A DNA stretch of 64,000 bases from Hemiscyllium ocellatum. Its lineage: Eukaryota. Shown piece after piece: positions 42,670-42,991 of the stretch. Numbering within the stretch: position 1 is the first letter of the stretch; the number at the start of each line of letters is the position of its first letter. The position numbers and the translations under genes were made by a program. The stretch lies in assembly GCF_020745735.1 (NCBI RefSeq), contig NC_083420.1:73254237-73318236 (forward strand), given 5' to 3'. The notes under the pieces are model-generated. The model saw nothing but the letters and a program-made list of their open reading frames with translations, made no database searches and was not told the origin of the DNA.

Positions 42670-42697
42670 AGTTTTTGTGCTGACCAGGAATACAGTG
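42670..42697 (-). other. 12-bp-spacer recombination signal (D2-type 3' RSS) directly after the VH(D) coding end
   Basis: Minus strand CACTGTA-TTCCTGGTCAGC(12)-ACAAAAACT. Confidence 0.88.
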
Positions 42698-42991
42698 ACA
42701 CCCCCTTCTACACAGTAATCCATACGGTATCTTCCATCTTCAGGCTCTTCATGCCCAAAAAAAGATATTGTTTGATATATCTTTGGACACAGTAAATCGA
42801 TCCTTAATCATCAAGGCATATATTTTACCGGATGAACTATACTTGGAAACTAGGCATTACAGCCCCTGTTCGGGAACCTGTTGGACCCAGTGCATATACA
42901 AACTGTCAAGATTGAACCTGCTGATTTTACATATCTGTTTCACAGAGACATCGCGATGGCCACTCTTTGCTTTTGGCATAGTCAAAATAAA
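42698..42991 (-). pseudogene. IGHV: VH segment with fused D-like junction (germline-joined VD), disrupted
   Basis: [63 protein letters not shown](fs)MKSLKMEDT(fs)MDYC-VEGG. Cys23, Trp41 and Cys104 are present; one stop and two -1 frameshifts. Confidence 0.93.

Follow-up and report, generated by a model that had tools for sequence, protein, structure and literature searches.

The window, that is, the whole 64,000-nt stretch of Hemiscyllium ocellatum DNA that was analyzed, contains a germline partially joined VD(D)-J IgM cluster, in which a decayed VH segment is fused to the 3' end of D2 and the J segment is still separate. Pre-joined antibody genes have been described in sharks since the 1980s, and IgM clusters with a partial germline join (VD-J) were first found in the horned shark Heterodontus francisci; the present cluster is one more example of this known class. 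We consider it highly probable that a germ-line RAG-type join of V to D2 in an IgM minilocus, now dead, explains the whole arrangement. The reference for comparison was L006, an unrearranged IgM cluster of the bamboo shark Chiloscyllium punctatum and a public locus reached via proteins. The other loci compared included L003 and L005, both from the C. punctatum assembly GCA_003427335.1, and the bamboo-shark locus L001. The features around the join were as follows.

43149..43251, minus strand: promoter-proximal / 5' UTR DNA, from BLAST homology to L001, L003, and L006 starting at 43251
43115..43148 (approximate), minus strand: leader exon remnant with ATG at 43148-43146 and the splice donor lost, from by-eye comparison with the L001 leader
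42705..42991, minus strand: VH exon, pseudogene, from three-frame translation and alignment to intact shark VH
42698..42704, minus strand: D2-derived 3' end of the coding joint, GGGGTGT, aligned to the last 7 nt of L006 D2
42670..42697, minus strand: D2 3' recombination signal with a 12-nt spacer, unique in the window, with a positional homologue in L006, L003, and L005
42324..42669, minus strand: D2-J intergenic DNA including the decayed J 23-RSS, from global alignment to L006 D2-J
42270..42316, minus strand: JH pseudogene segment, from alignment to the J of L003, L005, and L006

The VH and junction stretch (42991-42698, minus strand) was of the shark IgM type, as the VH showed 69–73% nucleotide identity (about 72%) to five shark IgM VH exons. 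This decayed VH ended in TAC TGT (Tyr-Cys), with the Cys codon at 42714-42712, followed by 14 nt, GTAGAAGGGGGTGT, at 42711-42698, which began with the V-derived end GTAGAAG; the sequence leading into the Tyr-Cys codons on the minus strand, GAT ACC GTA TGG ATT ACT GT, was a decayed D-T-A-x-Y-Y-C. The recombination signal came next, consisting of the heptamer CACTGTA (42697-42691), the spacer TTCCTGGTCAGC (42690-42679), and the nonamer ACAAAAACT (42678-42670). The pattern CACWGTR-N12-ACAAAAAC occurred once on both strands of the 64 kb window, with 0.04 occurrences expected from shuffled sequences. Of the J 23-RSS there were remnants: a nonamer, AGATATGGC, at 42353-42345, a 23-nt spacer at 42344-42322, and a heptamer reduced to CTGTG at 42321-42317. 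The J coding start lay 381 bp from the D2 heptamer, the J heptamer remnant lay 346 bp from the D2 nonamer, and a gtaag donor was kept directly 3' of JH. A looser scan allowing spacers of 11–13 and 21–24 nt found no further RSS-like site between the 12-spacer signal and J. An earlier note, made from the sequence alone, had described exactly this layout, with about 14 nt after Tyr-Cys, a 12-RSS, JH about 380 bp away, and no other RSS between, and both the layout and the lack of another RSS were confirmed. At the 5' border of the gene, high-copy repeat DNA began at about 43208 and overlapped the upstream third of the promoter-proximal feature; read depth reached the repeat level from the 43208-43274 bin upward, and was single-copy only downstream of about 43208.

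In L006, the V end was ...TACTGTGCAAGAGAC, and the V signal kept its 23-nt spacing; the heptamer of this signal was mutated, unlike the intact one of L001. The L006 D1 was ATGCGACAGCGGGT, with a 3' signal of CACAGTG-22-ACAATAACC and a weak 5' nonamer. The L006 D2 was ATATAACTGGGGTGA, with 15 coding nt and 12-spacer signals on both sides, the 3' one being CACTGCA-12-ACAAAAACC, and the J signal was AGTTATTGT-23-CACTGTG. The order V-22/23, 12-D1-22/23, 12-D2-12, 22/23-J, which the earlier note had given for unrearranged clusters, was thus seen in L006 for the well-preserved signals. The D1 and D2 cores assumed for the window were taken from L006, and therefore from another genus. BLAST aligned the window to L006 in two blocks: 43251-42711 with 3906-4472 (V), and 42704-42171 with 5212-5883 (the D2 3' end to J). 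In a multiple alignment, GGGGTGT|CACTGTA-12-ACAAAAACT of the window paired with the L006 D2 sequence TGGGGTGA|CACTGCA-12-ACAAAAACC, and the next 346 nt of the window paired with L006 D2-J intergenic DNA. Global alignment of this 346-nt stretch to L006 D2-J gave a score of 214, with 259 of 339 positions identical (76%), whereas the scores against the L006 V-D1 and D1-D2 DNA were 4 and 5, both at the level of shuffled sequences. Because the DNA downstream of the joint matched D2-J and neither V-D1 nor D1-D2, the 12-spacer signal was identified as the D2 3' RSS. This comparison, which had been proposed as a check on the join, therefore matched the joint and its downstream DNA to the D2 3' end, D2 3' RSS, D2-J DNA, and J, and it supported the claim that a V ending in a 12-RSS had already been joined to D2.

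Relative to L006, about 733 bp (4473-5211) were missing from the window, comprising the V 23-RSS, the V-D1 DNA, D1 with both of its signals, the D1-D2 DNA, the D2 5' signal, and approximately the first 8 nt of D2. The L006-homologous D2 3' 12-RSS, D2-J DNA, and separate J were retained, and the 12-RSS was intact in form. The unusual CACTG(T/C)A heptamer, the spacer length of 12 nt, and the ACAAAAAC nonamer of the window signal also occurred in the D2 3' RSS of three bamboo-shark clusters. Between the window and L006, two of the 16 heptamer and nonamer positions and six of the 12 spacer positions of this signal had changed, which is not clearly fewer changes than drift would give. Both ends of the deletion lay approximately 1–8 nt from heptamer/coding borders; this geometry suggested a RAG coding joint with end trimming. 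In the mechanism that we propose, V and D2 of a V-D1-D2-J-Cmu minilocus would have been fused by a RAG-type coding join in the germ line. Such a join would have removed about 730 bp without affecting the D2 3' 12-spacer signal, the D2-J DNA, or J, and the VD(D)-J arrangement would be the result. The joined cluster would then have become fixed or common in the population, and would have turned into a pseudogene afterwards.

The first seven nt of the 14-nt junction, GTAGAAG, corresponded to the V end GCAAGAG, and the last seven, GGGGTGT, to D2, whose 3' core is GGGGTGA in L006 and lies directly before the homologous heptamer. A partition of the junction between V and D2 along these lines is uncertain at about 25% divergence; compared with L006, about 8 nt of D2 and 1–2 nt of V would have been trimmed. 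The G-rich coding joint pointed out in the earlier note was present, but its G's belonged to the germline D2 3' core and were not added nucleotides, so that G-richness is no evidence of N addition here. No D1, P, or N nucleotides were recognizable in the junction against the L006 cores at about 25% divergence. As D1 nucleotides were not recognizable, direct joining of V to D2 and a V-D1-D2 join from which D1 was trimmed away are equally likely, and the claim that V had joined D2 "with or without D1" was compatible with both routes. Under the 12/23 rule, a V 23-RSS may legally join a D2 5' 12-RSS. The join would accordingly have proceeded either between these two signals with deletion of D1, or through D1 with its subsequent removal by trimming.

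Further downstream on the minus strand were the constant-region exons of the same cluster.

39187..39471, minus strand: Cmu1 exon, from tblastn with the IgM heavy chains P0001 and P0002
26718..27028, minus strand: Cmu2 exon, frameshifted, with tblastn matches in two frames and a weak Pfam C1-set match
24459..24752, minus strand: Cmu3 exon, from tblastn (66% to P0001) and phmmer matches to shark IgM chains
21857..22296, minus strand: Cmu4 exon with secretory tail (...VDTVNSCQ), frameshifted, from a Pfam C1-set match (E=1.2e-6) and tblastn in two frames
20089..20187, minus strand: transmembrane exon TM1, from tblastn (82% to the P0001 C-terminus)

P0001 and P0002 are shark IgM heavy chains found by phmmer with the Cmu3 piece as the query (nine matches). 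P0002 is a cDNA-type chain, and the bamboo-shark loci were reached from P0001 and P0003. When the decayed V piece was the query, a word-indexed protein search returned no match. V, J, Cmu1–4, and TM1 had a single orientation, and the cluster was collinear with L001 over the whole 30 kb, introns included, down to about 13 kb. The IgM minilocus is complete, and transposons have inserted between its exons. Between Cmu3 and Cmu4, positions 22375-24165 held a retroelement-like insertion with reverse-transcriptase-type ORFs and a strong GC skew; relatives of this insertion occurred elsewhere in L001 and in L002, and the same intron of L001 was without it. On the other side of the gene, nine tandem copies of a 253-bp unit with 97% matches occupied 52661-54970, on the 5' side of a long LINE ORF (56027-58882).

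Over its full extent, from V through the TM exon, the cluster is a pseudogene. The VH had an in-frame TAA stop at 42859-42857, where GLEW has its Glu, and had lost 1 nt near 42760 and another near 42722, so that the frame shifted twice before Y-C. In J, the WGQG motif was changed to RGHA, and 1 nt was deleted. The stop in V and the frameshifts in V, J, Cmu2, and Cmu4 left no open reading frame across V(D)J and the C exons. The J signal had kept its 23-nt spacing, its heptamer was short by 2 nt, and its nonamer had drifted. With the J signal broken, the cluster is frozen and its rearrangement can no longer be completed. The V exon (about 72%) was no better conserved than the intergenic DNA (76–80%), which fits a long neutral decay. 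The view that this copy had decayed after joining was therefore borne out as to decay by the stop, the frameshifts, the lost leader donor, and the broken J signal; joining probably preceded the decay.

Two other clusters with a VDD-J layout were found in the C. punctatum assembly, at L003:5669-6132 and L005:4447-4922. Their D2 3' RSS (CACTGCA-12-ACAAAAAC), D2-J DNA, and J were homologous to those of the window and the layout was the same, whereas both kept remnants of D1 (CAGTGGGG in L003, TATACTACAGT in L005) and, at 69–77% identity to the window, were not orthologues of it. The L003 junction was ACAAGAG-CAGTGGGG-AGCTGGATTGT; its V exon and its 12- and 23-spacer signals were intact, which leaves L003 one join from function. 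The L005 junction was GGAG-TATACTACAGT-AATTGGGCTGTAG, and the J of L005 had an in-frame TAA just before the Trp codon. Retention of opposite parts of D1 suggests that the joins in L003 and L005 were independent; judged from these junction sequences, a single join followed by divergence would also be possible.

The existence of two pre-joined IgM clusters in one assembly, and the multiplication of IgM clusters by duplication, give some weight to the idea that the join was made elsewhere, the window's cluster being a duplicate or gene-conversion recipient of an older VDD-J cluster and the RAG event predating the locus. However, the junction was 14 nt long in the window, versus 26 nt in L003 and 28 nt in L005, and also differed in content, and a closer relative was not found, the V being about 72% identical to that of every other cluster compared. 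We therefore regard an origin elsewhere as a minority possibility that deserves some weight, and favor a join at this locus. Distances over the V exon and the D2-J DNA gave the window no special affinity to L003 or L005 and placed it about equidistant from the compared clusters. None of the loci compared was an orthologue of the window's cluster. P0004/L007, the protein closest to the window Cmu3, was considered as an orthologue and rejected, as it came from a 748-bp contig with only 75% DNA identity. These loci thus offered no shared junction in another genus by which the join could be dated. In L002, positions 1-360 were a D2-J piece 80% identical to window 42636-42485, directly after J-C-intron-like sequence; no V or J was found near this piece, and L002 is a scrambled or truncated bamboo-shark IgM cluster.

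A deletion by a process other than RAG, such as replication slippage or end joining, could in principle have eliminated the V-D2 interval by chance. In favor of this, the pseudogene cluster carries other deletions, and L001 (9757-9800), otherwise unrearranged, lacked approximately 190 bp, namely the 3' half of D2, the D2 12-RSS, and the start of the D2-J DNA, with no regard for signal borders. In the window, however, one end of the deletion was at the V coding end beside the expected heptamer and the other was inside the 15-nt D2 coding segment, and it is very unlikely that, over approximately 1.2 kb, two ends placed at random would both come to lie only a few nt from signal borders. We consider chance deletion very improbable, and retain the RAG-type join. 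The gap in L001 itself could block normal rearrangement by the 12/23 rule, or could alternatively be an assembly error. The initial comparison with L001 had pointed to a V joined to D1 only, with the 22-nt spacer of the D1 3' RSS shortened to 12 nt and D2 decayed in place, but L001 is without the 3' half of D2, the complete L006 aligned both the signal and the downstream DNA to the D2 3' RSS and D2-J, and the L006 D1-D2 intergenic DNA did not align above the shuffle level; this reading was ruled out.

Single contigs spanned 42005-43374, and hence the join, in three samples of coded tissue and kinship from two studies. The depth of the join-spanning contigs equaled that of the flanking unique DNA. 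Allelic differences were an A>T at 42624 in sample S2, an insertion of ATCG after 42795 in one run of sample S3, and a C>T at 42325 in another S3 run; as the S3 runs differed by these small variants, two S3 haplotypes both carry the join. That three samples, drawn from two studies, carried the join at the depth of unique DNA and with allelic differences indicated that it is inherited, in support of the earlier proposal of a heritable rather than somatic event; the joining itself would have taken place in germ cells. Shark thymocytes commonly contain somatic VDD-J intermediates (PMC2435157), yet capture of a lymphocyte rearrangement or an assembly artefact in the reference is scarcely credible against contigs of three samples in two studies and two haplotypes of one sample, and it is implausible that a locus with a broken V, J, and J signal and with introns full of transposons would recombine somatically.

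No run recorded as RNA contained the stretch in a search of runs. In two runs, contigs joined 42274 (the J 3' end) to 42762 (V framework 3) with unknown letters between; their depth was approximately four times that of single-copy DNA, their shorter side had only 24 letters, and they probably derive from fully VDJ-joined paralogues elsewhere in the genome. Within the D2-J DNA, at 42471-42604, contig depth rose to about eightfold the unique level, which indicated that several paralogous IgM clusters of the genome share this piece at at least 90% identity.

A hallmark of cartilaginous fish is the possession of IgH clusters joined in part (VD-J, VD-DJ) or completely (VDJ); in some species approximately half of the loci are of this kind, and they have been attributed to RAG activity in germ cells (PMC3308330, PMC5192425, PMC2193156). 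As in the VD-J clusters of Heterodontus francisci, the window has a cluster-type IgM gene with V and D fused in inherited DNA, a separate J a few hundred bp away, a D 3' signal facing the J signal, and the leader and J-C introns retained. Unlike those clusters, the copy described here is a decayed pseudogene from another shark with a 14-nt junction in which D1 is unrecognizable, and it may be a direct V-D2 product. In nurse shark lymphocytes and thymocytes, VDD-J is a frequent intermediate with V, D1, and D2 joined before J (PMC2435157); this product is alike, whereas the nurse shark intermediates are somatic and cell-specific and the window join is inherited. The nurse shark IgM1gj and the whale-shark locus L004 (4460-4540, Rhincodon typus NC_063338.1), which had a full in-frame germline VDJ, ...YYCARDWGGSLHYWGQETMVTVTA, with a splice donor after it, are likewise recombination products fixed in the germ line; in these J is joined and the frame is open, whereas the window has an unjoined J and a dead gene.

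Pre-joined antibody genes provide direct evidence that RAG has acted on inherited DNA, and they bear on the origin of non-rearranging from rearranging receptors. The window copy adds a dead, dated-looking example in which all of the parts could be assigned by homology, and it leaves the overall picture unchanged. It shows that a G-rich junction originated from the D2 core and that a join without a trace of D1 exists; only the latter, which is compatible with a one-step V-D2 join, is mildly new. Taken with the bamboo-shark junctions, it raises the tentative and rather doubtful idea that one-step V-to-D2 recombination skipped D1 here, and that RAG in the germ line repeatedly yields an 'everything but J' product. 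If true, this would mean that the pre-assembly of inherited antibody genes is biased toward the same 'everything but J' product that is dominant in thymocytes.
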